Positions 11,238 to 27,900 of a DNA stretch of 64,000 bases are shown here, piece after piece. The DNA is from Hyphochytrium catenoides. Taxonomy: Eukaryota > Protista > Hyphochytriomycota. The notes under the pieces were generated by a model that did not search any database, was not told where the DNA came from, and saw only the letters and a list, made by a program, of their open reading frames with translations. Where the stretch lies: contig FLMG01000016.1 of the NCBI GenBank assembly GCA_900088475.1, positions 1 to 64,000 of the forward strand, read 5' to 3'. Made by a program: the position numbers and the translations under genes. How positions within the stretch are numbered: the first letter of the stretch is position 1; each line of letters begins with the position of its first letter.

Positions 11238-13973
11238 TTAGATAAAAACGTAGTGTGGCATTCTCTTGGGGTCAAGAAGGCGATAGGGCAAAACATTATC
11301 TTCGTCTGCTCGCTTATTGATGTCTTTCGAGATTGCTGCCAGAGACTTCATGAACTTGGTTACAGTGGAAGCGGTAGCGGCATTGTTGAAGTCAGCAGAC
11401 TGCAGCCCGTCATAAAAGACTTGATCAGGAGTCATCGGCCTCGCAAACATCAATCCTGTGAGTATGACATCCAGTGCGACAGGGTATGGGGGCAACCACT
11501 CAACAATGTTTGTGACCCCTCCTTTTGTCGATGGTATAGCCTTCCCAATTGATGGTGTCTGGAAGGGAACTGTCATGCCCAACTGGAACGGGTTGTAGGC
11601 GTTCATCGCATGGTGGCGAGTGGTGCAGAGATGGACAAAGTGGGCTAGATGGCTTGATAGGTCATCAACGGTCGTGAAAGAGGATGGAAAGCCCTTGACT
11701 TTTCCGGGGTCGCCAGTCTCCGCAGCCCATTTCTGCAACTCTTGGTCACCAGCGACCGCGCTGTCGCCTGGGTAGTAAACCTTAAGGTAGTCAGTGATAA
11801 ACCTCTTCGTTGCTGCGTTTATGGCCAAGGCGTCCTAAAGAAGGGAGAGTGATCAATGAAAAGTTAGACCATGCCAGCCAGTGCATAGAGCTACTAGGCC
11901 AAGAATGGTTGAGCCAGGTTTCAAAGAACGTTACTGGGCAAGGATAGGATTAATGCAGCGGAGCCGGCCCCTAAACACCTTTGCAGACTAAAGCAGGGAA
12001 CAACGTACCACGAAGTAGTCAAAAGAGGGTAGAATATCACTCAGTCCTCGGGTTTGGATCTGGACGTCCAACATATCTTTTTGCCAGGTCCATCCTTGAA
12101 ATTTTATAGCCGTGAGCAACTGCGACCCTGCAGCCCCAAGGGAGTTCGTTCGATCACGAGTGCCACTGTCCGAAGGGTAGAGAAGCCTGAAAGCAGCGAG
12201 AGAGTTGCCAAAGAGAATCTTCGTATAAAATTCAAGCAATGCGCGAACCGGGTGATTCTTAGCCATTGTCCGGTAAAGTGCAACTTTGATAGGCTCAAGC
12301 GCAATGTGGCTGGACACAAAGTGGTCGACATTCTGCTCCTGAATGGCTGCGCTGTTGAAGAAGATTTTGGAGAGTAGCCAGTCATTGGCACTGTCCCTCG
12401 GAGAGAACACAAGTCCACCAGGAACTTCCACTTGGATACCTAAGACTGACAACGCCCCGTCCTCGTTGGGTGAGTATTGAAAGAGCGCGATGGGATTCCC
12501 CATAGCTCTCCCTGGAACAATAAATGGCTTGATTACTCGGAGATAAGATAGATCAGCAATGTAGAGCCGGCCAGAGCCCAACAATGTCTCTAGAGTGCTC
12601 GGCGCAAGCTGAAGATTAGCGTCCGTGAAACCCTCCGGAACTGCCGTCGCCTTCTGGAGCAAATGTGGGTACGAGGTAAAAAACTGCCTGGCGAATAGCT
12701 CATCGCTGGTAAAGTCATGCCGATTCAGCTCCGGCACATCGCCAAAGAACTCATAGAGGGCAAGGTAGTCCTTAAGGGATTTAGGCACCTGGGTGGCAGT
12801 AGAGCTGAGCGCGAGAAGAAAGCTTGGAAGAACCTTTTTCTGATAAAATGGTAGAAGCTCGCCCATTAGCTGAGCATACTCTGCTTCTGCAATGATTAGT
12901 CCTTGGGACCCGTGAATGGTGGGAGAAATGCCTGCTCTCGGTGAGTAAGTAATGCCTTGGGAGCTGACCGCCAGCTGGAATCCTCGGAGGAAAGTCGCCG
13001 GATCATTACTTGGTAAAGAGAGATCTCCACTTAGCTGCTGGGCCACCATAGTGGCAGCACTTTGGAGGCGGCTCAAGGTTAAGGTCATTTGCGGCCGTGA
13101 GAAACCGGGCGGTAACTGCTCGTCTAGAAGGAAGGTCCGAATATCGGATACTTTGGCAACCCCTTCCTTCCCCAGTCTGTGAAGAATCAGAGCGGCTTCA
13201 TGGAAGGCAGATGTGGACACCATAGGATTCCAAGCGAACTCTGGGTTCTGCTTCTTGGACTCTAAGAAGCGGATTTTCCTAGCAAGCGCTAATTCCTGAG
13301 CGCGAAGCGTTTTGCCGTCAGCAGAGAGTGACAAGAATGACTTGACAAGAGAGGCGTTGACCGCTGATGGATCGCCCCCAAGATAGGCGTCGTTATGCAC
13401 TAGGGAGGCATCATGTTCCGCTGCATTATGCTTTGAGAGATCAGAGAGGGCAAAGCTATTCATGTCCGCTATTGCTCCCAACTTCTTGGCACCTGCTACG
13501 ACTATCATTGAGAGCTCTGGGTCCACGTTGTAAACGGCGTCAAGCGCAGCGATGAGGCTACTGACACTCACATCAGCACCGTTCCGGTTGATGTAGCCAT
13601 GATTCGCAAGAGCGTTCAGTCCCGGACAAGGACTCCGTTTGAATGGCGCCGAGTTTCCTGGTACTCCGGAGACCTTGGTTCTGGGCGGCTTATAGTAAGC
13701 TCCGACTCTCAAAGACGGATTGTAGTCCTTCAAGAGCTCATCCTCTCCACTTCGCGATTCAGGTCCATAGTTTCGCGGGCGGTACGACCGTCGCATGCCG
13801 CCTCGCCTCTCCTGGAAGAGCTGTTGGAGGTCTTGGTGGAAGGGTAAAGGAAAAGCCTGCACAGTTACCGATTCCATTGCTGTCTGAAATGAGATCAGCC
13901 CCATTATTAGGAGCAAGGCAAGGGCTGAGCAGCGGTGGGATACAACGCACAGCGGCGCCATCCTTTGCCACAT
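11238..13973 (-). CDS. Secreted fusion of a heme-thiolate peroxidase/unspecific peroxygenase (chloroperoxidase family) domain and a lipoxygenase; 2 exons (13973-12009, 11834-11238), about 853 aa
   Basis: Signal-like hydrophobic N-terminus. HTP motifs RSPCPGLNALANHGYINRNG, AEHDASLVHND and a distal Glu (AFHEAALIL). LOX motifs SDELFARQ, DWLLSKIFFN, HFVSSH, HPVRALL, DQELQKW, HLCTTRHHAMN and a C-terminal Ile (PHYVFI*). A phase-0 GT-AG intron at 11835-12008 joins FDYFV|DALAINAA in frame. Confidence 0.92.
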
Positions 13974-15688
13974 ATGATGTTGGCGGCGTCCTACCACGAT
14001 CTGCCGCGCTGACCTCGCAAGTCACGAAGTATCAATGGTTCTGAAGTCCACCAATGTCGCGAAGAAGAAGTGATGACACGACACAGTTGCTATAATATGC
14101 TGCGATGATAGTCGCAATCGCGGCAAAAAGGAGAGGACCAGATCAACCCTGTGGCCGATCGATCCAGATCTTCCTTGTCAATGATCGTCAAAGAGAAGAC
14201 AGGCAAGTGATAACTACGACGGGCATGGAATCTGGCGGGTCGCCTGAATGACAAATGGACAGATTGAACTAGGTCGTGCCGTTGCTAACAAGCAAGTGAA
14301 TTCTTACTTTATAGACAAAGCAAGGCAGGACGAGGGATGCAACCTCTTTTTTATGGCTAGAAGAGCTCAATCATAGATTTATAAACATTGAGACTATGAT
14401 TGAAGACCATTAGGAGCTCCAGCTTCGAGATTTTTAGCTAACCGCTAAACCCTCCTGTGACATCGAAGGAGCGCAGAGGCACTGCCGCTCTCTCTTGCTG
14501 TTCCCAAATCAAAGATACCCTTGCCGATCTCGAAGGGCAGCAGATGGGGAAGAGGGGAGAGATCGACCTCCCGAGATCATGGGTAGAGAGGAGTATCTCG
14601 GACATGGGCGGCCCTGACAAGATAGGAAGGTAGGGAGGAGCCATCAATCATCATCCAAAGCCAATATCTGCGAGTACTTCCAGTTTATCAGTGGACGAGA
14701 TTGGTCGAGGAGGTACCGAGAGATTGAGAAAGGCGAATGTTTAGGTTCAGCAGGCTAGTCACTCCTAGTATGAGTACATTTCCGCCGACCAAGAGAACAT
14801 GAGATAAATGTGGTTTGTCATCAGAGAGGAGGGACAAGAAGGATAGACCAACAAGAGGTACAACAAGAGGAAGGTAAAGGTGGCAGTGACAAGAAGGGTC
14901 CGTAGTGAGAGGAGAAGAAGAACAAACCCACTAATAATCTTAGTCGCAAAGGCCGCTTTCTTCTGTCGGTGGTGTTACTCAGTAAGTATATAAAAAAGCT
15001 ACCGCTGATGGCGACATGATCGTGCATTCGCCTTGAAAGCGCCTACTTTTTTTCCTACTTCTTGGCCCTCTTCTTAGTAACCTTATCTGCTTACCTTATT
15101 CTTTGGGCTCCTCTTTTATCTCTGTGCAGCAGCGCAGAACTCCTTGCATGACTGCCAACACGAAAAATGGGTTCCTATGATGGCTATGGATGATTGGGCT
15201 GCTTACCACTAGGAAGCAGCAGCAGCAGGCTTCTGTTGTCGTCGGTGGCTCTTCTATCATCAGTGGTGGCACGAAGACTGTGAACTGTGCTTGATATCTT
15301 TCGCCCTCGCAGCCTTGCCACCTGTCTTTCTCTCATAGATTGGTTTGTACTGCCGCCGCACTGCTGGTCGACCGATCTGCTGTGGATCTTTCCCGCCGCG
15401 GGTGACCCTTCAAAGATCTTCAGGCGACGCTTCAGAGCTGGGCTGCCAAATAATCAACTTAAATCTGTTGGGAGGGGAGTAATCTATGGGATTGTTCCTT
15501 GGGGATGCCCAATATTATGGCGATTTCATTTTGGGAGGTTTTGGGTCTAGGGGGGTTTGGCCTTGTTTGGGTGTTGTATACTACTGGGGCGACCACTCTG
15601 AGGGAGGGGGTGGTAGCCGTTTTACTCATCATTGAGGGGGACACCACGACCTTTGGGAAGGAAACAGAGAAAGAAAGTGGGTCATGCT

Positions 15689-15771: not shown

Positions 15772-17453
15772 TGTCAGGCTTTATCATCCCGCTTGCTCTC
15801 AAGAAAAACCCTTCTCTTCCTGCTGCTTGGATTGTCGACCTAGCTCTCTTCCGTCTTTGTTCTCCATCAAACCCTCGAGGCAACAATAGAGGAGACGATG
15901 CTGGGCTGATAGAGGTGGCGTAGGCTGCACCTGAGCTTATGCATAGCTAGAAGTACAAGGAGAAGAGTCAGTCTACGACCAGAGCGGACGGAGGCGGGAC
16001 AGCAGAGCACATGAAGGCAGCCAAGAAGAGGAAGAGGAGCTCATCACTTGTTGAGGCCAGACAGAGAGGCATTGTGACATGGCTTCCTGCTGCTGTTTCT
16101 GTTGTTTGTCGTGGTCCCTTCCTTCCTTCTTTCTCCTTCTGAATTGTGTCAAGAACAGCTGGAATTTCAAGAACAAGCCATTCTCTCAACAATGGCGCAG
16201 TCAAGGCGACAAATTAGTCGAACGGCTCCTCTCTGATTTGGGCAGGGGCGAGCTAAAAAATGGGGATGGAGCTGCCGTACCCTCCTGGCCCTCGCTTCGC
16301 TACTATGGTGCTTCTTCGATTTGGATAGGCCTGCAGGAGGCTGGGTGGGTTGAACAACAGCAGTGCGGTCTCAGCTGAGATATGATCACGCTCATCAAGC
16401 CGACTGTAACTTCTTCGAGAAGAATGTTTTCAGTAGTAAGAAGCCTGTCGTCCACAAGGAGGTAGGGTGATGACGTGGTAGGTAGATGGCGATAGATAGC
16501 TGAGGATGGGAAGAGGTGGTGGAGAAGAGGGGAGAAGCCAATGCCTTCTTCTTTCACCTCCTGGGCTCCACACGCTGCAGGGCTGGACTGTGGGTTCTAG
16601 ATCTGGCTGTAAACCACAAAGACCCTTCCTCTCTTCCTCATGGTGGCGTCTCTTCGATCCCCATGAGACTCAGTCAAAAAAGATAGTGACAACTAGGAAG
16701 AGTAGAACTAGAACTAGATGTAGCGGAGATTGCTGCTGCTTGTTCCCTTGCTATCGAGAAGTAATAGTCGCGGGGGTCTCCATCTGAATTGAAAGAAGGC
16801 ACTCAGAGGACGAGGAGCGCGTGGTGCAAGAAAGAAGATCGGTCAACACGCTCTTCCAAAGCCAAAGCTGGGGCCAGGCAAGTGTCCTTACTGTGCCCAC
16901 TTTAAGAGTGATGACATTGTTTAGAATATTTTTTATTCAGCAAACGAGAGGTTGCTTTTTTCTTAGCTCACTCAACTTCTTTGTTTTCTCATCCTCCGGG
17001 GATGAAAATGTCATGAAATGGACACATCTTCAGCCCTTCTCTTTGCTTTCCTTCCCTTTGTTGGCAACGTCACGATAGAAGAGGCACCTTGGTCCATTCG
17101 CCTGCCCTCTTTCTTCTGTCCTTCTACAGCTCCTCCAGCGATTCTTCAGCCGTGACCATTCCGGGTTACCATTGAGAGTGATACGTATAATAAAGCGTGA
17201 GACTGTTAACTCATTAGAATAAAGTGAGGAGACCAGCTCACTTTTTGCTTTGCATCTTCAGGGATAGCTCATAATCTGCGGCATTTTGCTAGCTTCTTCT
17301 TTGTTTGGGCGTGCATTGCTTCAAAGAACGGAGGCCAATTATTGGTGCTTGCTGACTTCTTAAGGCGGCGCTGCTATTAACCACGCAGTGGAGCGCGGAC
17401 CCTAGACAGACTCGGTCCTTCATATTGGCCATCCTTCATCATATTCTGGCATA

Positions 17454-20400
17454 ATGGGGGTGGCAGATTGGGCAAAGCCCCAGGAGACCTACTCCAGCTA
17501 CAACTTCCTAGGTTCAAGTGAGACGCGGTCCTACTTTCATCAGCACTTGAAGTCAGAAGAGTTCACCACCTTCAGTCCTCAGTTCTTCTTTTGGTCCATG
17601 CTATGGTTCATTGGCTTTGCTATACTGAACGCTGCTTGGCGCAGTGGGAAGCTTGGATCTGTGGCAAGTAAACTGAGTCCTATTCGTCGTGTCCAGCTAA
17701 TGTTCCAGCTTCTAAGCCTTATTGCGAGTCTGCTTATGCTGGGAGTCATGGTAGTGGTTACGACATATGGAGAGCTCTCCACGGTCCTATACACTGGCAG
17801 TCTCACTCACGAGTACTCGGAGGAAAAGTTTGTCGATGAATGGTCCTCTCCCCCTCGTGCAGTCAAGAAAGCTTCAATGCTGATGCTCTTCGCTGGATAT
17901 GCAGTGGTGCCCGTAACCACCTTATATGTCATGGAGATTCTAGGCGTTTCCTTAACGATCTCGCTTTCTCCTGCAGCAGCCACTGAAGCCAGCAGAAGGC
18001 AGGCTACTCCACAAAGCCCATCTTCTGCTGATACCGACCGGCGCATGGTCGCAGAGACACCTCCCCCTCAGACTATTGCCGACAAGCCTCCAGCAGCTAG
18101 GGTGGATAGTACCGCTGATGACTCTGGCAGCAGAAAAGACGCCAACATCGGAGTTGTAATGAAAGACAGCGCCAGCAGGCGCAAACGGAGTGCCGAAGGT
18201 GGTGATAGTCGTCTGAGTCCCACGGATAATGGGAGCCCGATGTCCCCGGTAGTGGCAAGATATCCTCCTGATAACTCCCTTGCTGGCAGCACAAGGGAGG
18301 GAGAGGAGGAGACGGCAATGACCCGTAGTCTTTTGGTCGTGTTTATACATCACCTTATCGTCCTGCTGCTCTACTGCATGGGTCTGTCACCGATGTTCGA
18401 GTGTATGGATATGGCCTACTTCAGGATGGCATGGATCCTCTCTCTGCACATTGCTTTGGAGTTCCCCTGCTTTCTCGCTATCATAGCCTATAGAGTGAGC
18501 GATAATAAGCACCTCGTGAGGCGCGGTATGGAAGGATGTGCCATCTACACTCTCATTCTGCGGATCTCTGTCAATGTCCTCGCGTTTCTCTCCTACCTGG
18601 ATATCGCTTGGCTAAGGCTGAAATTCACTGACTGGGATCTCTTCTGGCGCTGGACATTTCCTTGGATTTTCATCATCCTCGTCCTAGCTCAGCTGTACAT
18701 AGTTCGCATCTATTGGATCATCCGCACCAAGGCCATGATGGAGACTGAGACCCTTGACCTGTCACTACAGAGACAGCAGCTGGAGTCTGGAAGGGGCAAG
18801 GAAGAAATAACTAGTTTAGGTGACAATAAGGTTGTTCAGCTCTCCTCTGCAGAAGATGGCGTGAACTCAGTGGATGGATCGAGAGAGAGAGCGAAGAGCG
18901 GGTTCTCCCAATCCTCCTGGTCGTCGCCAGCAGCTGCGCGCTTCACCAAGGCTACTTCATCTATGATGTTGGCCCTGGAGGTCCCAGCAAGCGGTGGAAG
19001 GTCTAACAACCGAGTAATGTACGACAAAGCAGCTGCTCCTGCTGGTACCCTCATGGATTACTATCTACGCCTGCCTTTCAAAAGGTTAACAGTCCTCGCT
19101 ATCTTCTTCTTATTCTTGATTTGCGTACTATTCATCTGGATCCCATTCTCCTGTGAGACATGCTCCATAGCCAAGCAGCGCGTAGCTGTCATTGGAGGAG
19201 GGCCAAGTGGGCTGGTGGCCGCATGGACTCTAGCCAAGACCTCACCTAACTTTGAGATAACGCTCTTCGAAAAGGACAACCGCTTAGGAGGCGCAGCCTA
19301 CACTTCCAACTATGTGGACGAGGATACTGGCGTGGTAACTGGAATAGATCTGGCCTTCCGAGCCTTTATAGACTACTATAACTTTGAGGATCTTATTGAT
19401 GAGCTCGGCATCGACGTGGATAAAGAGATAGAGTCCCTCTCCACTGGCTTCTCTTCACAGTTCAACGATCAAAAAGCAAACGAGAGTGTGTTTGTTACCT
19501 CTGCGGAGTTTTCTCGGCCCCTCGCTGCTGGAAAGTCAAAGTACGACTTCCATATGGAGCGAGTTCGGCTGAGAGAGCTCTTGGAGGACGCTTCAGCGAC
19601 GTACTCGGAGGAAGTGCTCATGACAAAGACTTTGGGCGATTTCCTCAATGAACATAACTTTTCTCGTGTTTTCATTGAGGTGCACATGAAGTCCTGTCTC
19701 TTCCTTTACGTGGGAACAGCAGCAAAGTATCTCTCTACCCCTCTATCCGTAATTCTATTCCTGGAGAAGAATGTACACATTTGCACGTCGATGGATATGG
19801 ATGGCCGAGCCTTGACTAAGAACTTCAGGAATGGTACCCAGGTGTATGTAGAAAGGCTCGCGGCGAGGTTACGGGAAGACGGTGTCACCATCCGGACGCA
19901 GACTGAGGTTCAGAAACTCTCCCCAAGCTCAAGGAGTGGCCTCCCACTAAGGACGACAAAGACAAATGTCCTTCTGAATGGTGGCCAGGAGGAGGAGTTT
20001 GATCACGTCATCATCGCGCTCAGAGTCCCTCATCTTATACCCCTGCTTGCCGCAAGTCCAGATAGCTTTCACGCTCTGAATATTCCTAGAAGGCTGTATA
20101 ATACGGCCAACATGGAGATCACTGACGTCGCAGCGGTGGTGACAGCGGCCAAGAATGGACGACACTCTCCCATCGACATCATCTCCGCTAACTCTCTTAG
20201 CGGCACCAGGCCGAGTACTCTGATTGTTGACGACAAAGATTCCAACCAGACCAGGCAATGCTACATGTTTGAGCAATGCAACCATTTCCCAGCCGACATC
20301 AAGGATGACCTCTCGACGACAGAACCGGTATCCATCGGCTTCCAGTTCTTTGACGTGACAAAGTGCTATGACAAGGAGTCCATGAACTCCGTGGGTCCTT

Positions 20401-20774
20401 TCATTCTGTACGCTGCGACTCCGCTCATCGAGAAGCTTCTCAATAACATGAAGGAGGAGTTTAGTGATGCCAGTATCACAGCTCGGTTCAACGTCACCAC
20501 GCATACGGTGGGGTTCGCTCTCGGTGCTCGAAATATGCACAAAGCACAGGGTCTTCATAATATCTGGTACGCGAGTGCTGACTTCTCCAGCCTCAACCTG
20601 CATGAGTTGGCAGTCATCAATGGCATGGCCACTGCGCAGGCCATTGGGGGCAGGTATCCGGACACTAAGAATGCGCTCGCCGTAGAGAGGTTCTTGAGAT
20701 TTCAGTATTGGCTGATGTATGGGGTTAATCCCTTTGTGGCCAGATACACTGAGAGAAGCTCAAGGAGACTATAG
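17454..20774 (+). CDS. 1106-aa fusion of an N-terminal multi-TM TLC (TRAM/LAG1/CLN8)-like domain and a C-terminal FAD-dependent amine-oxidase-family oxidoreductase
   Basis: Intronless ORF with several TM helices carrying a TLC-like pattern (LYVMEIL...VFIHHLIV...ALEFPCF...ILR). After a further TM come a Rossmann motif VAVIGGGPSGLVAAW, LFEKDNRLGG, IDLAF, FDHVIIA and a C-terminal QGLHNIWYA...LHELAVINGMATAQAIG. Confidence 0.8.
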   Translation: MGVADWAKPQETYSSYNFLGSSETRSYFHQHLKSEEFTTFSPQFFFWSMLWFIGFAILNAAWRSGKLGSVASKLSPIRRVQLMFQLLSLIASLLMLGVMVVVTTYGELSTVLYTGSLTHEYSEEKFVDEWSSPPRAVKKASMLMLFAGYAVVPVTTLYVMEILGVSLTISLSPAAATEASRRQATPQSPSSADTDRRMVAETPPPQTIADKPPAARVDSTADDSGSRKDANIGVVMKDSASRRKRSAEGGDSRLSPTDNGSPMSPVVARYPPDNSLAGSTREGEEETAMTRSLLVVFIHHLIVLLLYCMGLSPMFECMDMAYFRMAWILSLHIALEFPCFLAIIAYRVSDNKHLVRRGMEGCAIYTLILRISVNVLAFLSYLDIAWLRLKFTDWDLFWRWTFPWIFIILVLAQLYIVRIYWIIRTKAMMETETLDLSLQRQQLESGRGKEEITSLGDNKVVQLSSAEDGVNSVDGSRERAKSGFSQSSWSSPAAARFTKATSSMMLALEVPASGGRSNNRVMYDKAAAPAGTLMDYYLRLPFKRLTVLAIFFLFLICVLFIWIPFSCETCSIAKQRVAVIGGGPSGLVAAWTLAKTSPNFEITLFEKDNRLGGAAYTSNYVDEDTGVVTGIDLAFRAFIDYYNFEDLIDELGIDVDKEIESLSTGFSSQFNDQKANESVFVTSAEFSRPLAAGKSKYDFHMERVRLRELLEDASATYSEEVLMTKTLGDFLNEHNFSRVFIEVHMKSCLFLYVGTAAKYLSTPLSVILFLEKNVHICTSMDMDGRALTKNFRNGTQVYVERLAARLREDGVTIRTQTEVQKLSPSSRSGLPLRTTKTNVLLNGGQEEEFDHVIIALRVPHLIPLLAASPDSFHALNIPRRLYNTANMEITDVAAVVTAAKNGRHSPIDIISANSLSGTRPSTLIVDDKDSNQTRQCYMFEQCNHFPADIKDDLSTTEPVSIGFQFFDVTKCYDKESMNSVGPFILYAATPLIEKLLNNMKEEFSDASITARFNVTTHTVGFALGARNMHKAQGLHNIWYASADFSSLNLHELAVINGMATAQAIGGRYPDTKNALAVERFLRFQYWLMYGVNPFVARYTERSSRRL

Positions 20775-21343
20775 GGGAAGAAAAAGGGGTGTCAAGCAGG
20801 ATTAATAGCCCATCGGACAGGAGTAGATATAAGAAGGCCTAATAGAAGTCAGCACGAAGTGAGAACGAGAACAAATAGAGTCTGTGCAGTCGATCGACAA
20901 AGAAGAAGGCGAACGAGGGCTTTTCAATGGTAGGTCCTTAGTACGTCGAAGTGACAGCTCAACTTCTTGATCAATGGCTTGGCCAGTGACAAATGACCAT
21001 CCTTTTCTCCGAGGGAGGCCTACCTATCTAATGGCGGTCTTCGATGGTATAAATAGCAGCGAAACAGAATCACCACCACACACATCGGAGAAAGAGTCAG
21101 CAACAGGGCGTTAGACCCACAGGTCGGTACCTCTTGGTCAGCGCGTTAGGATGACTTAGACCGCCGCCGTAGGTTCTCAGCTAAAGTCAGTCATCTACCT
21201 GTTGCTGTATAAGATGAAGATTGCTTTGAATGGCACACAGTTTCTTATCTTCTTCTCTGGGAGCTTTCTGACTGCTTTGGGCACCTCAATGGGTGATGGC
21301 AAACCAGCGCGTTTGAATCTACTAAGCACGATCCAAAGCATTA

Positions 21344-21973: not shown

Positions 21974-24900
21974 TCACTTCCTCTGCTCCTTCTGGCTCTT
22001 AAGTTCCAGCTTACCCACTGCCAAGGTGTGGACTTCGTCAGGTCCGTCAGCCAAGCGGAGTACACGGGCCCAAGTCCACAAATGGGCTAGAGGGAAGTCG
22101 TTGGAGACTCCAGCGCCTGGAGAGGCGATAGAGCGACACAAAGCATCTATAAGTTAGTTCGTATCAGACAGAACGCGAGCTGTCCATGCGGTAGAGCAAG
22201 CTGCTCTCCTCCGTTCCTAACCCAAAACCTAGCCTCACTCCGTTTATCCGTCTTAGTAAGCTTTGATCTGCTTTGATACTGCCTTTCCCAACCATCAGAA
22301 ACTAACAGAGGAACCCTAAATGCTCTTTCCCAAGTCTCTGCTTATCGTTTTTCTCCGCCCACTCAAAACGTCGTTGCCTTCTGGTCGGCTTCCCTTTTCA
22401 TTGCCTCACCTCCGTGCACTTGTATAGCACGATCAAGAACCTTTTGAGCCATCTGGGGCGCCACTACCTTGATCATTGCTATCTCCTTTCTCGCCGCTGC
22501 AGCCGGAAAAGTTTGTTAATTTAGAGCGTCGTGAGAAAGAGAAATGGAGAGGATCCTAGGAGGCGTGGAGATCATAGGTAAGAGAGAGAGAGCGGTGGCG
22601 GCAACCAAATTCAGGAAGCTGGATAGATACCTTTGTTTCCGACTGTATCCATCTTGCGTGCTGCATCGAGGACAAGGAAGCGCGCCTAGCATCATACACG
22701 ATTGGACGATCGCAATATTAACAATAGCACGGGATAGTGGAGTGTATCCCGCCTAACCGACTCTCTGCCACCTTGCTCAAGCAACTCTCTGTGTCTCTCT
22801 TCTTGGCCCGTACCTGATCAATCTCCATACGGCATTGTGCGATAGCAGTAAGCACACCGTCCATCTCAGAAAACTTCTTCCCGAAGGCCTGTAGCGAGCA
22901 AATACACCCAAGATGCACACTCAAGTCAGGCACTTCGCTCAGAATGGTTTTCAGCACTGAACTAAAAGCCTCCTCTTCTCTTGCGCGGTGCCGGCTAGTA
23001 CCAAACGGCCACGCTGGCCACTACAGTATCCGTTACTCCTAATGTCGCTTAGAACAATCGCTCTTACCTTTCGCTTAGAGGCTCTATCGGCCATGAGTTC
23101 GACAGCGCGCTCTGCTGCACCTATGAGACGCATGCAGTGGTGGATCCTGCCCGGGCCCAGTCGGCCCTTACAAAATGGATTCAGTCAGTTCCCTATCGAA
23201 CAGCCCAAACTGATGGATCCAACTCAAGGGATCCAGCTCAGCTCAATCAAACTTATTGCTGTCCGTCGGAGCTTTCGTATATTTAGATTTTCCCGTCCTT
23301 TGATACATTCTTGCATCCACTAAGCGATGAACAGCACATCATTTTATAGCTGTCACTCTTTATATGAACCCATGTCCTCCCTGTCATTTCCCGCCTTCAG
23401 CCTTCATGCGCCCTACCTGTGCAATTTCAAAGCCTCTGCCCTCTCCCAACAGGATATTCGTCGCAGGAACACGGACATTCTGAAACGTCATCTCTGCATG
23501 GCCCTCAGGGGCATCATCAAAGCCAAAGACTGGAAGAGGGCGTAGAACCTCCACACCTTCCAATGGTGAAATCAGGGTGAAAGCGCGAGAATAAAGGAGG
23601 TCAGAAGAGGAGAGACGGACACAGCACCAGGAGTCAAAAGAAGCCTTATAAAGTTATAACGTTTGGTTCTTGGGAACAAATGCACGTGATCAGAACAACT
23701 GCAATGAATATATGGTGTCCATCGCTAAAGAGCTCAACTTCATAGACACTATAAGTTGATCCAGCGACAAGAGCGTAAGAGCGACAGCTTGTGGCAACTA
23801 GTGAGCAACGCCTAGAGTAAAGAGAAGTCCGTAGCGTTTGCGAGGGAGTAACAGAGGGTAGGGAGGCAAACCTGGGGCGTCCATGGGAACCAAAACCATG
23901 GAATGTCGCCTATGCTTTTCAGCATCTGCTAATTCTGGGGTTCAAAAGGTATGGAGAAAGTGAACAAGGAGAGAGCAGGTATTAGATAGTTAAATTCCTC
24001 GAAGGTCAGTGGGCATTCCAACTGGCGCTCATCGGAGGTACCTTCATTCTGTCCCAAAAAGATGCAAAGCTTGCAATGCGGGTCTGGAGCCCCGGATATC
24101 CACCACTTTTTACCGTTTAGTACAAGCCAGTCTTCCCCTTCTCCTCCCGTTTTCTCACGTCTTATTGAGGAAGAGATATTGGTGGCATCGCTCGACGCCA
24201 CATCAGGCTCGGTCATTGCAAAGCATGACCGAATTTCCCCCTAAAAGGCAAGAGTATGATACGTTGCTAGACTATTAAGTAATCGACCACTGAAAGCTAG
24301 TACCAACGAGAATACTCGCGATGACAGGGTTTCTCCAGAAGGCGCCTCACAAGAGACAAAGAATGTACCACTATGTAACACAAGTCGCAAGCAAAACCAC
24401 CAACTGCTCGATATCAAAGGAGAAAGTGCACTGTGAGCAGTGATAGTGGCTGACGCCAATTCACTCACCTCTAATAATGGCAATAGCCACCGGTTTTTCT
24501 GTTCCTCAGTCCCGTAACGGGCAAGGATTTCCATATTCCCTGTCACCAGTGGTTAGGAGTGAGGGAGAAACTTGCCTACAATCAACAAGCTCCTGTTTCT
24601 GATCTCGCTGTTTGCACTTCTAGCAGTACCTGTATCCGGAGCGCTGCAGTTGAAGATCTCAGGGGCAACTATGGACCTGCCCATCTCTTCACACATCGGG
24701 GCGTACTCGGCATTTGTCAGCCCAGCACCATATTTCCCTAAAGCGTGGGCAAATAACGAGGGCATTACACACTATGGTCAATGACGGTCACCACTGGCTA
24801 CCAAGGGTTGATGGGATACTCCACGGATAGGCGAAGAATGGACAGTGCTGTAAGTCGTGTATCAAACGATGCCATCAGCAGGACCTTAAATGGGCTTGTG

Positions 24901-27900
24901 CAGTCAGTTTGGTCCAACATAACAAAAGAGATTACTTCCGAGAAGAGAGAATAAAAGAGGAATAAGCACACCCTACCGCTGTCATTTTCCACGGGAAGGA
25001 AGAGGTTCCATAGTCCAGCGGCTTTGGCCTTCCCTTTCAGCTGTTCTACTAGTGGTGCCCGGGCCTTCCACTGTCATGCATATGGAAATAAGTATATAAA
25101 GAACAAGTATATGTATAAACTAGGTCTCTAAAAACATAAGGTAGCCGAGAACAATGGAAATGGAGTGAAAAGGTTGTGGCCGTTCAGAGGTAGCAAGGAA
25201 GTGAAATGCTGGTCTAACAGCATCTGCGTGGCAGCGGTCACCCTGTTAGAACAGCCAGGGTATTCCGTGAATGAGTGAACCACGTAAAAGCACAACGGTA
25301 GAATGTCACCTTATGTGAAGAGTGATAGTTGTGGTGCAGGATCTGCTGTTCAACGGGGAGAATCTCATCTCTGACAAATTCCTTCACTTCCTTCAGTAGC
25401 TTGGTTGCCTTCTCTGATAGTCCATAAGGGGGCTGTGAATTTAGTGGTTAACGCCAACAGAGAGAGTCAAGTAATAAGGGACGAGACTATCAAAGATCAG
25501 TGTTTAGCGAGAGGGACGTAGGTTTATGAGAACAAGGGGGGAAGTTTTGTGAAGACTGAGCGACCACGTCTCGATTAAACTTACTGAGATGCTGTCTCTG
25601 CCGACTGCCCGGGGCAGTTCTGCCTTGGCAGTTGCATGGAATCCTCCACTGAAGGCAGCGCCGGTTGCCGACATTTCAGCATGATGCTGCTGTATCAGTT
25701 CATTTCCTAAAGGAAGTCCAATCCGTGCAGTTAGTAGACAGCAGGATTCGATATGGGGCACCAATGGTCCATAATACATAATCAACCACGGAGTCAGGGG
25801 ATGCAAGGAGGATCACCTTTCTTCGCCATTGCTGAGGCTAGTCGACCCACAGCCACTGCCTTATGGGAGCTGGCATTGCCCTGCTGGGCTCTACAATAAA
25901 CACCCTAGGCCCGGTTATTGTTAGCATCTAGTACCGCCAACATAGGTCCCACAAATGAAGAGCAGACATAGCTAGGAGCATGAGTAGTGTATATGAGCAA
26001 GCACACCCTAAGCGATAGGACGGGTGCAAACAAATTGAGCTATCAGACACTGCGGGAAAGGACGTGCAAAAATAGAGTTGCCTTTGACACAAAGAGCAAT
26101 AGGGGTGCGCTTTTCACCTGCAAGATTGCTGCCACCCTAAAGAACGCGAAGGCAACGTAGAAGTTCCAGTTCTCAATACCACCAGTAGGAAGCCCCGCCC
26201 GACGACAGTACTCATCCAGATGCTCCTGTAAAGTGGGGATGGCCAACGCGGAGTGATCAATTCCCTAATGAGAGCAAGATGAATGTTAGCTCAAACTTTA
26301 TAGCAGAAAATTGGAGCGAAGAGGTGAGAAGTGAACTATTGCAACATCTTAGATAGACATATCTCAGTTGCTCTAGCTTACCTCTAATCCTCCAAGAGGT
26401 GGAGGGGTTCCCTGCTTGAGATAGTACAGCAAGGAGTTAAAGGCCAGGTCACTCATAGGGTGACCCAGGGTTGATAGCTCTATAATGATAGGGAGACCAC
26501 CAGGTGAGCAGCTGAAAACCGTAAAGAGAAAAAAGAGGAGGAGATGGCGCTCACCCCAGTCTAGAATTCCTTCCACCTCCAAAGTCTTTTTGTTAAAGAT
26601 CATATTGTCCAGGCGTAGATCTCCATGCACTAAAGTTGTTTGGTCGGTAATCGTCCCGACGTACATCTCAAGGTACTCAATCAGCTTTTCCATGGCTCGA
26701 GGATCGTGGTCCGGAGTCAGACTTGCCTATGCGAATAATTAGAGGGATAACTCTTTCCCCTCTACAGCTGCCGGAATGTATCTCGTTGTACCACACATCT
26801 TGTCCGATGCCACATCAGTCCCCACCTTTCCTTCTCCCTTTTATTGATCCTGGCGTCGCCACACATTCCCTTGCACCTCCATCCCGGACTCACCTTGTAC
26901 TGAGTGGTCCAAGTCTTCATTTGACGTTCAAAGTACCTTCCCTCTTTTCCATAGTCGGCTAGACCTACGAGACGGTTAGATAATGCGGTTTTTCCCCACG
27001 GTGAACCCCGTAATCTTTAGTCTGGCGTTGACGCTGGGACAAAAGTCAAATATTACGTCACAGATCACACCGGGTAGCACTAACATAGCATAAGCCCTCA
27101 CTTAAAAGAAGCCCGGCCTATCGTCTCCCGTACGGTTGGACAAAAGCAGCTAACAGGCTTGCCCTGTCCATAACTTCTGACTGTGCTTACCGATCGCCTT
27201 GTAGTCCACCTTGTGTAGATCAGCGATCTTTTGTACCATGGAGATATAGACTCTCTTCCTGGCGCTCCCGTTACTTCCGAGCTCATCTAAAGTCGGCTGC
27301 TTGAATAAAAACCCTGGGGTGTAGTCGTAGATGTAGAAGGGAGTCCCGATTACGGAGCGATCCTCACAGTACAGACGGACGTTAGGTACTGGGATGTTGG
27401 TCCTAGAGCCCAAAGCCTTCATGATCTGAACATCGCGATGAAGGCAGGAGCTCAGATTTGATCGAGGAAGAGCGGTTAACACTGATGTTTAAGGGTTTCA
27501 TTGCCCAGCCAGCCAGCCTTTCTTAAGGGGCCAATCGGACAGAGAGTATTTGTGCGTACCCGATACTCTCGGTCGACAGCGTGTGCCCCTTTCAGAAGCT
27601 TGCCGTGCGGCTGACGTCTGAGCACGAGCGGAGGAAATGAGTCGGACCTTATGGCGTACGTCTATGACAAGAGAGTAAGCCGATTTGCCTTTTGAAGCTC
27701 CACACCGTTTGCACCTACCGGATTACTCTGTCCATGACTAAACCGGCGGACATAGATTTGATCAAAGTCATTGTGGCGCATCTCAGGAATCTTTGGCTTC
27801 AAATAATCAAGCAGCTTCTGAAAGTCTACATCCTTATTCCTGTGTGCAAACGTATGTTGATAAAAAGTAAGCCTTACCCTTAACCCAGCATATTGGGATA

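Follow-up and report, generated by a model that had tools for sequence, protein, structure and literature searches.

A conserved protist fusion of a TLC-like membrane barrel with a UfaD/LkcE-type flavoprotein in Hyphochytrium catenoides

Introduction

Ceramide synthases (CerS), the TLC-family acyltransferases TLCD1 and CLN8, and the bacterial flavoprotein UfaD are the closest described counterparts of two modules that are joined in one protein of the hyphochytrid Hyphochytrium catenoides. The protein is encoded by a single 1106-codon open reading frame (ORF) at positions 17454–20774 of the forward strand in a 64,000-nucleotide window, by which we mean the whole stretch analyzed (contig FLMG01000016.1, positions 1 to 64,000, of assembly GCA_900088475.1). 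Its N-terminal half is modelled with a CerS/TLC fold, its C-terminal half belongs by sequence to the amine-oxidase-fold flavoproteins, and the same fusion recurs in an unannotated family of protist proteins.

In CerS6, two histidines (H211/H212) lie on transmembrane helix (TM) 4, D242 on TM5b and Y189 on TM3; the N-terminus is lumenal and the C-terminus cytosolic, and the cavity opens to the cytoplasm while the acyl tunnel lies in the lumenal half (PMC11919693). TLCD1 and CLN8 are lysophospholipid acyltransferases (PMC11838012, PMC13661276), small TLC barrels without the Hox domain. Their mechanism is ping-pong by way of an acyl-histidine, and an acidic residue and an arginine are conserved in them; TLCD1 works through acyl-H117, and disease mutations of CLN8 affect a conserved His and a conserved Arg (PMC11838012).

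UfaD (RSP1091) of Cereibacter/Rhodobacter sphaeroides has a predicted domain binding nicotinamide or flavin adenine dinucleotide (NAD/FAD) and desaturates a phospholipid-bound acyl chain in furan fatty acid synthesis. Its product was detected only in O2-grown cells, and UfaO, the next enzyme of the pathway, is a DUF1365 protein (PMC7380195). In eukaryotes, a precedent exists in Arabidopsis AT3G23510 (AtUFAMD1), where the partner of the UfaD-like flavoprotein is likewise a lipid-modifying module, a cyclopropane-synthase/UfaM-like methyltransferase (PMC10940516). That partner is soluble and uses S-adenosylmethionine, and AtUFAMD1 is found on lipid droplets (PMC10940516), whereas the partner in the window protein is a polytopic barrel of predicted acyl-CoA type. 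Literature searches on the barrel-flavoprotein architecture and on COG2907 returned nothing relevant.

Results

One reading frame spans eight predicted membrane helices and a flavoprotein

The ORF begins with ATG and runs uninterrupted to its stop codon, specifying a protein of 1106 amino acids (aa). Its parts are listed below; pLDDT (predicted local distance difference test) refers to the AlphaFold2 model described in the next section and KD to Kyte-Doolittle hydropathy.

17454..20774, forward: whole gene, 1106-codon ORF with stop codon; ends match those of relatives; intact in two other DNA runs
17574..17966, forward: TM1–TM3 of the CerS/TLC-fold barrel, aa 41–171; model helices 41–64, 76–105 and 135–171; near-invariant Y158 and E161 on TM3
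17970..18317, forward: TM3–TM4 loop insertion, aa 173–288, predicted cytosolic; lineage-specific, disordered
18318..18743, forward: TM4–TM7, aa 289–430, best conserved part of the N-terminal domain; pLDDT 88–97
18348..18353, forward: H299-H300 codons (CAT CAC) on TM4, candidate acyl-accepting histidine pair
18459..18494, forward: E336 (E-x-P, at the TM5a/5b break) through R347, both invariant; model helix broken into 320–334 and 337–348
18744..19073, forward: low-complexity linker, aa 431–540, predicted cytosolic; length variable among relatives
19086..19148, forward: TM8, aa 545–565 (KD 3.12), followed by a conserved P-x-x-C
19173..20651, forward: amine-oxidase-fold FAD domain of the LkcE/UfaD kind, aa 574–1066, from Pfam, the LkcE match and bacterial homologues
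19194..19211, forward: GxGxxG (G581/G583/G586), invariant in 20/20 sequences; E606 and G612-G613 also conserved
20601..20606, forward: H1050-E1051 of the C-terminal motif, in 14/15 fusion proteins and 5/5 bacterial proteins; common to LkcE
20652..20771, forward: C-terminal tail, aa 1067–1106, of the type Y-P ... F ... W-M-M-Y-G-V-N-P; conserved in the fusion clade only

At both its N-terminus (M-G-x-x-x-W) and its C-terminus the protein lines up with the termini of the relatives P0010, P0018 and P0019, and the gene limits are therefore taken to be right. The gene is also covered, with its frame kept, by same-species contigs from two further DNA runs, one of these contigs spanning 18100–20822. 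Compared with these runs, the ORF carries 19 single-nucleotide polymorphisms. Of these, 10 fall in the two folded domains, with 9 synonymous, and 5 in the TM3–TM4 loop, with 4 non-synonymous. Purifying selection thus acts on both domains, and constraint on the loop is relaxed.

Hydrophobic segments were found at about aa 44–62, 84–104, 142–170, 293–312, 326–346, 361–385, 400–423 and 545–565, that is, seven helices within aa 44–423 and an eighth that is the strongest. The AlphaFold helices agree with these segments, and pLDDT over TM1–TM3 is mostly 82–96. An intronless 1106-aa protein with a Ser/Pro-rich loop of ~120 aa interrupting the membrane bundle and an extra TM ahead of the flavoprotein had been proposed in a first reading of this DNA (the original prediction), and all three features were recovered, the last two as the loop at aa 173–288 and as TM8.

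The loop comprises 116 aa rich in Ala, Ser, Pro and Arg. Since it is absent from 24/24 aligned relatives, it is a lineage-specific insertion; its pLDDT is below 50 over about aa 200–264. An unspliced in-frame intron was considered as its origin and rejected: the loop contains no in-frame stops, against 4 and 11 in the remaining forward frames, and the frame-preserving GT..AG pairs offer a poor donor and purine-rich acceptors only. Because the frame is open and no credible frame-preserving intron is present, the loop is taken as coding.

The 3.3-kb intronless ORF stands among window genes cut into many small exons, including those adjoining it, and only 12 ORFs of at least 200 aa occur in the whole window. 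Relatives on metagenome contigs are likewise uninterrupted ORFs. At 18004–18129, in the disordered loop, and at 20793–21005, both same-species DNA runs yield two alternative short contigs each, of similar depth, which look like heterozygous haplotypes. Two further short contigs, at 17297–17546 (the 5' end of the gene) and 18824–19001 (the inter-domain linker), came with 95–99% identity from a possibly-RNA run, X4 (2025), labelled as another organism; by their sequence they point to a close relative or strain sampled elsewhere.

The N-terminal half is modelled with the ceramide synthase fold

Fold was assessed on two structures. The first is an AlphaFold2 model of the window protein built from the family alignment (pLDDT 77 overall and about 82–97 over the helices; predicted template modelling score, pTM, 0.70), and the second is a model of residues 1–320 of the loop-less relative P0011, 33% identical (pLDDT 83.6, pTM 0.80). 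Among 48,161 representative PDB chains searched with VIA-align, human CerS6 was the top match to the first model, with a Z of 15.1 over 252 residues (root-mean-square deviation 4.2), which, as the tool itself notes, is only slightly above the value of about 13–14 that helical bundles can attain by chance. The match spans model residues 12–428. It was followed by yeast Lac1 (14.5), yeast CerS (13.6), TMEM120A (11.9) and ELOVL7 (9.1), the last two being proteins whose six-helix barrels the CerS6 study compares with CerS6 (PMC11919693). In view of the chance level for helical bundles, the fold test was repeated on P0011, and the order was reproduced (15.5, 14.9 and 14.6, followed by 12.0 and 10.1, with the next value falling to 8.8). 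CerS6, Lac1 and yeast CerS are thus the top matches for both models, with Z of 13.6–15.9 over 231–252 residues, and the top six entries of a second-look list are all ceramide synthases.

A second program, Foldseek, returned no significant match for the window-protein model, with yeast CerS at rank 37. The long disordered loop probably hurt this search, because the loop-less P0011 model placed yeast CerS first (probability 1.00, template modelling scores 0.49/0.51). Seven helices with a TM2–TM7 barrel, as in the TLC family, are therefore seen with two models and two programs, and in these models the N-terminal half has the CerS/TLC fold.

Sequence comparison gave no such match. Pfam PF03798 (TRAM_LAG1_CLN8) did not match the whole protein or three N-terminal cuts at E ≤ 10, and none of 25 aligned relatives came up to the Pfam TLC model, the best value being E 5.9 for a single one. 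Barrel-family profiles run against PDB sequences recovered no CerS and returned only a spurious designed helix and a bile-acid transporter. For the N-terminal domain, a word-index protein search with the full protein and with the N-terminal half found nothing, feature searches of the ESM Atlas with the N-terminal half gave nothing usable, and a shape search there with the window-protein model gave nothing. The TLC-like bundle of the original prediction thus stands as a fold, by structural match to ceramide synthases, and by its motifs (see below), but has no match to a family model; of the two Pfam domains suggested for checking, Amino_oxidase was found (1.6e-14) and TRAM_LAG1_CLN8 was not. 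The protein is accordingly described here as TLC-like and not as a Pfam TLC member.

With sequence similarity undetectable and chance Z values as high as those quoted, the barrel might be non-homologous to the TLC family, a seven-helix bundle reached by convergence in which the His-His pair is fortuitous and the function another, such as transport. We consider this quite improbable. Ceramide synthases head the list of 48,161 chains, followed by TMEM120A and ELOVL7 and then a gap, with two models and two programs, and the structural matches cover all seven helices in order. In addition, a UniRef entry names P0020, a stand-alone relative from Seminavis, as a TLC domain protein, and the weak language-model neighbours of P0011 are TLC-named clusters (0.76–0.77).

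Conserved barrel residues share helix numbers with the active-site residues of CerS6

In the family alignments, H299, H300, E336 and R347 are invariant (25/25 and 26/26 aligned sequences), and Y158, E161 and Q413 are near-invariant. The Y..E, HH, E-x-P and R motifs picked out in the original prediction are the same residues. The invariant polar residues are also kept in stand-alone relatives of ~300 aa that lack the flavoprotein.

The model places Y158 and E161 on TM3, H299 and H300 on TM4, and E336 at the TM5 break, the same numbered helices that carry the active-site residues of CerS6. Pairing by helix number would set Y158/E161 against CerS6 Y189, H299/H300 against H211/H212, and E336 against D242. 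Ceramide synthases are recognized by a His-His pair with an essential Asp; here the pair is present, the acid is a Glu, and no Pfam TLC match was obtained, so the protein is not classed as a ceramide synthase by motif.

Overall, the barrel resembles solved ceramide synthases (human CerS6 and yeast Lac1/Lag1; PDB 8QZ6, 8IZD and 8QTR) in its seven helices with a six-helix barrel (Z 13–16 over 230–250 residues) and in having a TM4 His-His, a polar TM3 residue and an acidic residue on a broken TM5. It differs from them in lacking detectable sequence similarity or a Pfam TLC match, in having no Pfam domain, homeobox included, between TM1 and TM2, and in carrying the 116-aa TM3–TM4 insertion, the eighth helix and a 530-aa flavoprotein. 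TLCD1 and CLN8 are about the size of the ~300-aa stand-alone relatives. Unlike the window protein they are not fused to redox domains; no match between them and its barrel was obtained by sequence, and no TLCD1/CLN8 structure turned up in the structure searches.

The C-terminal half is a flavoprotein of the LkcE/UfaD side

Pfam matches at aa 576–862 to Amino_oxidase (1.6e-14, 54.5 bits) and NAD_binding_8 (4.3e-14, 53 bits) lie above the cut-offs of 19.8 and 21.9 bits; NCBIfam gave sub-threshold Rossmann matches only. Among PDB sequences, the only strong relative is LkcE (PDB 6F7L), a lankacidin amide oxidase/cyclase, at E 1.3e-21 and ~80 bits, in an alignment that covers the FAD-binding start and the C-terminal motif. 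Bacterial relatives from a word-index search are proteins of ~413–437 aa with 25–30% identity over about half the domain; one of them, P0008 from Nocardioides, is fused to DUF1365, the UfaO family. The Q-G..NIWY..LHE motif at aa 1032–1051 aligns with LkcE and with the bacterial homologues, H1050-E1051 falling on the HE of LkcE and of P0001–P0008.

We aligned the window domain with 14 fusion relatives and 5 bacterial proteins (20 sequences). The cofactor residues G581, G583, G586, E606, G612-G613, D632, Y798, D850 and H1050-E1051 are conserved. Compared with the bacterial proteins, the fusion clade has four additional cysteines (C748, C777, C936 and C971), the P-x-x-C after helix 8, and a 40-aa tail with conserved P1069, F1080 and G1090, situated past the point where the alignment of the bacterial homologues stops.

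The domain thus has the Amino_oxidase/NAD_binding_8 match, the intact GxGxxG, the conserved Glu, the LGG and the G-x-x-x-x-x-x-H-E motif of LkcE/UfaD-type proteins. By sequence it falls within the amine-oxidase-fold superfamily, on the LkcE/UfaD side, and cannot be placed in a curated equivalog. The original prediction had a full flavoprotein domain whose C-terminus resembles the predicted NAD/FAD-binding family found with cyclopropane fatty-acid synthases and furan-fatty-acid desaturases, and the alignments support this.

By description, the bacterial relatives are proteins of UfaD's kind (~420 aa). The window domain is ~110 aa longer than these and adds the four clade cysteines, the conserved tail and a membrane-helix tether. 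LkcE is its closest solved sequence relative, but it is a soluble bacterial polyketide-tailoring enzyme, and what the two share is limited to the cofactor motifs and the overall fold. Neither the barrel nor the flavoprotein domain occurs a second time in the window.

A sphingolipid-specific enzyme could be proposed from these comparisons, with the barrel N-acylating a long-chain base and the flavoprotein oxidizing the amine or amide, as LkcE does, or introducing a sphingoid double bond. The best structural matches are indeed ceramide synthases, and the best solved flavoprotein relative is deposited as 'Amine oxidase LkcE'. We nevertheless regard this as unlikely, given that no Pfam TLC or Lag1 match was found, that a Glu stands where CerS6 has Asp242, and that the LkcE similarity, at only ~80 bits, concerns the general fold. 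The structural search, moreover, cannot separate CerS from other TLC proteins, and the TLC-family matches that it returned were all ceramide synthases.

The fusion is conserved in an unannotated protist family

Where the word-index search had come up empty, an exhaustive HMMER search with aa 30–450 identified 30 proteins, nearly all with their best-scoring stretch in TM4–TM7. About 12 of them are 820–1530 aa long and have the barrel followed by the flavoprotein; the others are stand-alone barrels of ~300 aa. The fusion members include CAB9516189.1 of Seminavis robusta (910 aa, annotated 'amine oxidase') and EP00466_P012390 of Bigelowiella natans. Those from the Joint Genome Institute (JGI) are named 'predicted NAD/FAD-binding protein' or 'hypothetical protein'. 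The closest relative, 1001 aa on a 5.7-kb Logan contig, has 48% identity, and another fusion relative lies on a contig with eukaryotic-looking split genes. The linkers of the fusion relatives differ in length and sequence, and most of the aligned members have a hydrophobic helix ahead of the Rossmann fold. A transcript of the Marine Microbial Eukaryote Transcriptome Sequencing Project (MMETSP) falls in the same cluster as the Bigelowiella natans protein, and therefore one mRNA carries both modules.

The gene model could in principle join two adjacent in-frame genes, the second starting at an internal Met ahead of TM8 and encoding a signal-anchored flavoprotein. Met residues do stand shortly before TM8, at aa ~521 and ~534, and no RNA run carries the gene. 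Such an artefact is hardly credible, since the same module order occurs in one ORF across at least 12 divergent clusters with different linker lengths, one of them including the MMETSP transcript; the ~110-codon linker also contains no stop, and the other-strain contig 18100–20822 has its frame intact. It was rejected on the conservation of the fusion across relatives.

Thus, the fusion is real and conserved, and it defines an unannotated protist family that includes diatoms and other marine protists. The combination had been unfamiliar at first reading. It has indeed no paper that we could find, but it is not unique, being shared by at least 12 clusters, and the family, although conserved, is not an annotated one.

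Some relatives carry other partners. P0022 (317 aa, JGI, cut N-terminally by its 1.1-kb contig) has an acyl-CoA-binding protein (ACBP) domain after TM4–TM7 (E 3e-12). P0036, a 1526-aa ORF from a European Nucleotide Archive metagenome, carries ahead of TM1 a segment resembling a signal peptide, then DOMON and copper type II monooxygenase domains, and a stretch rich in Cys. It is a four-module relative, in which these N-terminal additions are followed by the barrel, helix 8 and the flavoprotein; P0049 and P0051 are built likewise.

The flavoprotein is predicted to face the lumen

ACBP domains are cytosolic, and DOMON and copper monooxygenase modules are extracytosolic. An ACBP following TM7 in P0022 and a DOMON-copper monooxygenase preceding TM1 in P0036 therefore fit a CerS6-like orientation of the barrel. 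The same orientation fits the distribution of charge, since the TM1–2, TM3–4 and TM5–6 loops and the segment before TM8 read as Arg/Lys-rich. With eight helices, both ends of the protein would lie on the same side, which would make the flavoprotein lumenal or extracytosolic. The four cysteines of the fusion clade, absent from the cytoplasmic bacterial relatives of the flavoprotein, fit this location as well. On the evidence of the fusions and of charge, the flavoprotein is thus most likely lumenal or extracytosolic.

Discussion

The window protein may be an eight-helix endomembrane enzyme whose two catalytic modules act on the same lipid, one by acyl transfer and the other by flavin oxidation, a proposal that we hold at about even chances. 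Catalysis, substrates and the coupling of the modules are drawn here by analogy with CerS6, TLCD1/CLN8 and UfaD. In the first module (aa ~41–430), the seven-helix barrel would take acyl-CoA from the cytosolic side, as in CerS6 and TLCD1; acyl-CoA use is suggested by the ACBP domain of P0022. A covalent acyl-histidine would form on H299, assisted by H300, and the acyl group would pass to a lipid acceptor positioned by E336, R347, Y158 and E161. After the cytosolic linker, helix 8 would recross the membrane and place the FAD oxidoreductase (aa ~574–1066) on the lumenal face, to which the acyl tail is directed in CerS6. Dehydrogenation by the flavoprotein would take place there, on either the acyl chain or the lipid product, and O2 would probably accept the electrons. 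The coupling of acyl transfer to desaturation or isomerization of the acyl chain that the original prediction suggested is plausible and accords with this preferred proposal. In terms of known systems, the protein could as readily as not work like a TLC-family acyltransferase joined to a UfaD/LkcE-type flavoprotein.

Several results weigh against this proposal. Apart from the sequence searches that failed to reach the TLC family, the empty ESM Atlas shape search, the Foldseek result with the window-protein model and the small margin of the Z scores over chance, the acidic residue is an invariant Glu (E-Q/F-P context) at the place paired with Asp242 of CerS6. No RNA run carries the gene, so that RNA evidence for it in Hyphochytrium catenoides is nil. 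A tblastn search of the 64-kb window with DUF1365 found nothing below E 0.16, and no known partner enzyme was found there, although a methyltransferase was not searched for; linkage to UfaO or a methyltransferase is a bacterial-operon feature, which makes this weak evidence in a eukaryote. Finally, by analogy with CerS6, a lumenal flavoprotein would face the closed side of the cavity, and direct hand-over of the acyl chain would need an extra opening. Its position opposite the cytosolic acyl-CoA entrance of CerS-type barrels is likely to limit the possible coupling.

The flavoprotein alone might instead be catalytic, desaturating or otherwise oxidizing membrane-lipid acyl chains as UfaD does with phospholipids. 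The barrel would then be non-catalytic and hold or deliver the substrate as an anchor, a lipid-binding scaffold or a sensor. On liposomes UfaD is active by itself (PMC7380195), bacterial homologues have no barrel, and no sequence-level TLC membership was found for the barrel. We consider this possible but doubtful: H299, H300, E336 and R347 lie inside the barrel and are kept in the stand-alone relatives, which argues for a chemistry of the barrel's own, and the ACBP fusion of P0022 points to acyl-CoA use.

On the reverse strand, 3.5 kb upstream of the gene, a 669-aa ORF at 11991–13997 joins Peroxidase_2 (heme-thiolate peroxygenase, E 1e-48) to a lipoxygenase segment (E 1e-6). Downstream, at 23932–27482 on the reverse strand, small exons encode Acyl-CoA_dh_M and APH (phosphotransferase) in an ACAD10/11-like arrangement. 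Three lipid-oxidation genes within about 17 kb are suggestive, although in a eukaryote this may be coincidence.

In the most far-reaching form of the proposal, which we think rather improbable, the protein is a trans-membrane assembly line in which the acyl-histidine tail held by the barrel is desaturated by the lumenal flavoprotein before transfer to the acceptor. The copper monooxygenase would then add a lumenal step in some relatives, and together with the neighbouring peroxygenase-lipoxygenase gene this could amount to an unrecognized protist route to conjugated, furan or other oxidized fatty acids.

What is new is an undescribed, conserved combination of two known modules, and its predicted orientation is unexpected. 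Acyltransferase activity of TLC proteins beyond the ceramide synthases was shown only in 2025–2026, and it was not until 2020 that UfaD-type flavoproteins were recognized as fatty-acyl desaturases. The conserved fusion of the two argues that both chemistries act on one lipid. It offers a handle on what a divergent TLC clade of diatoms, chlorarachniophytes and oomycete relatives may use as substrates, and it points to flavin desaturation on the lumenal side, a step without a described counterpart. With its ACBP and DOMON-copper monooxygenase partners, the barrel looks like a reusable platform for lipid tailoring.

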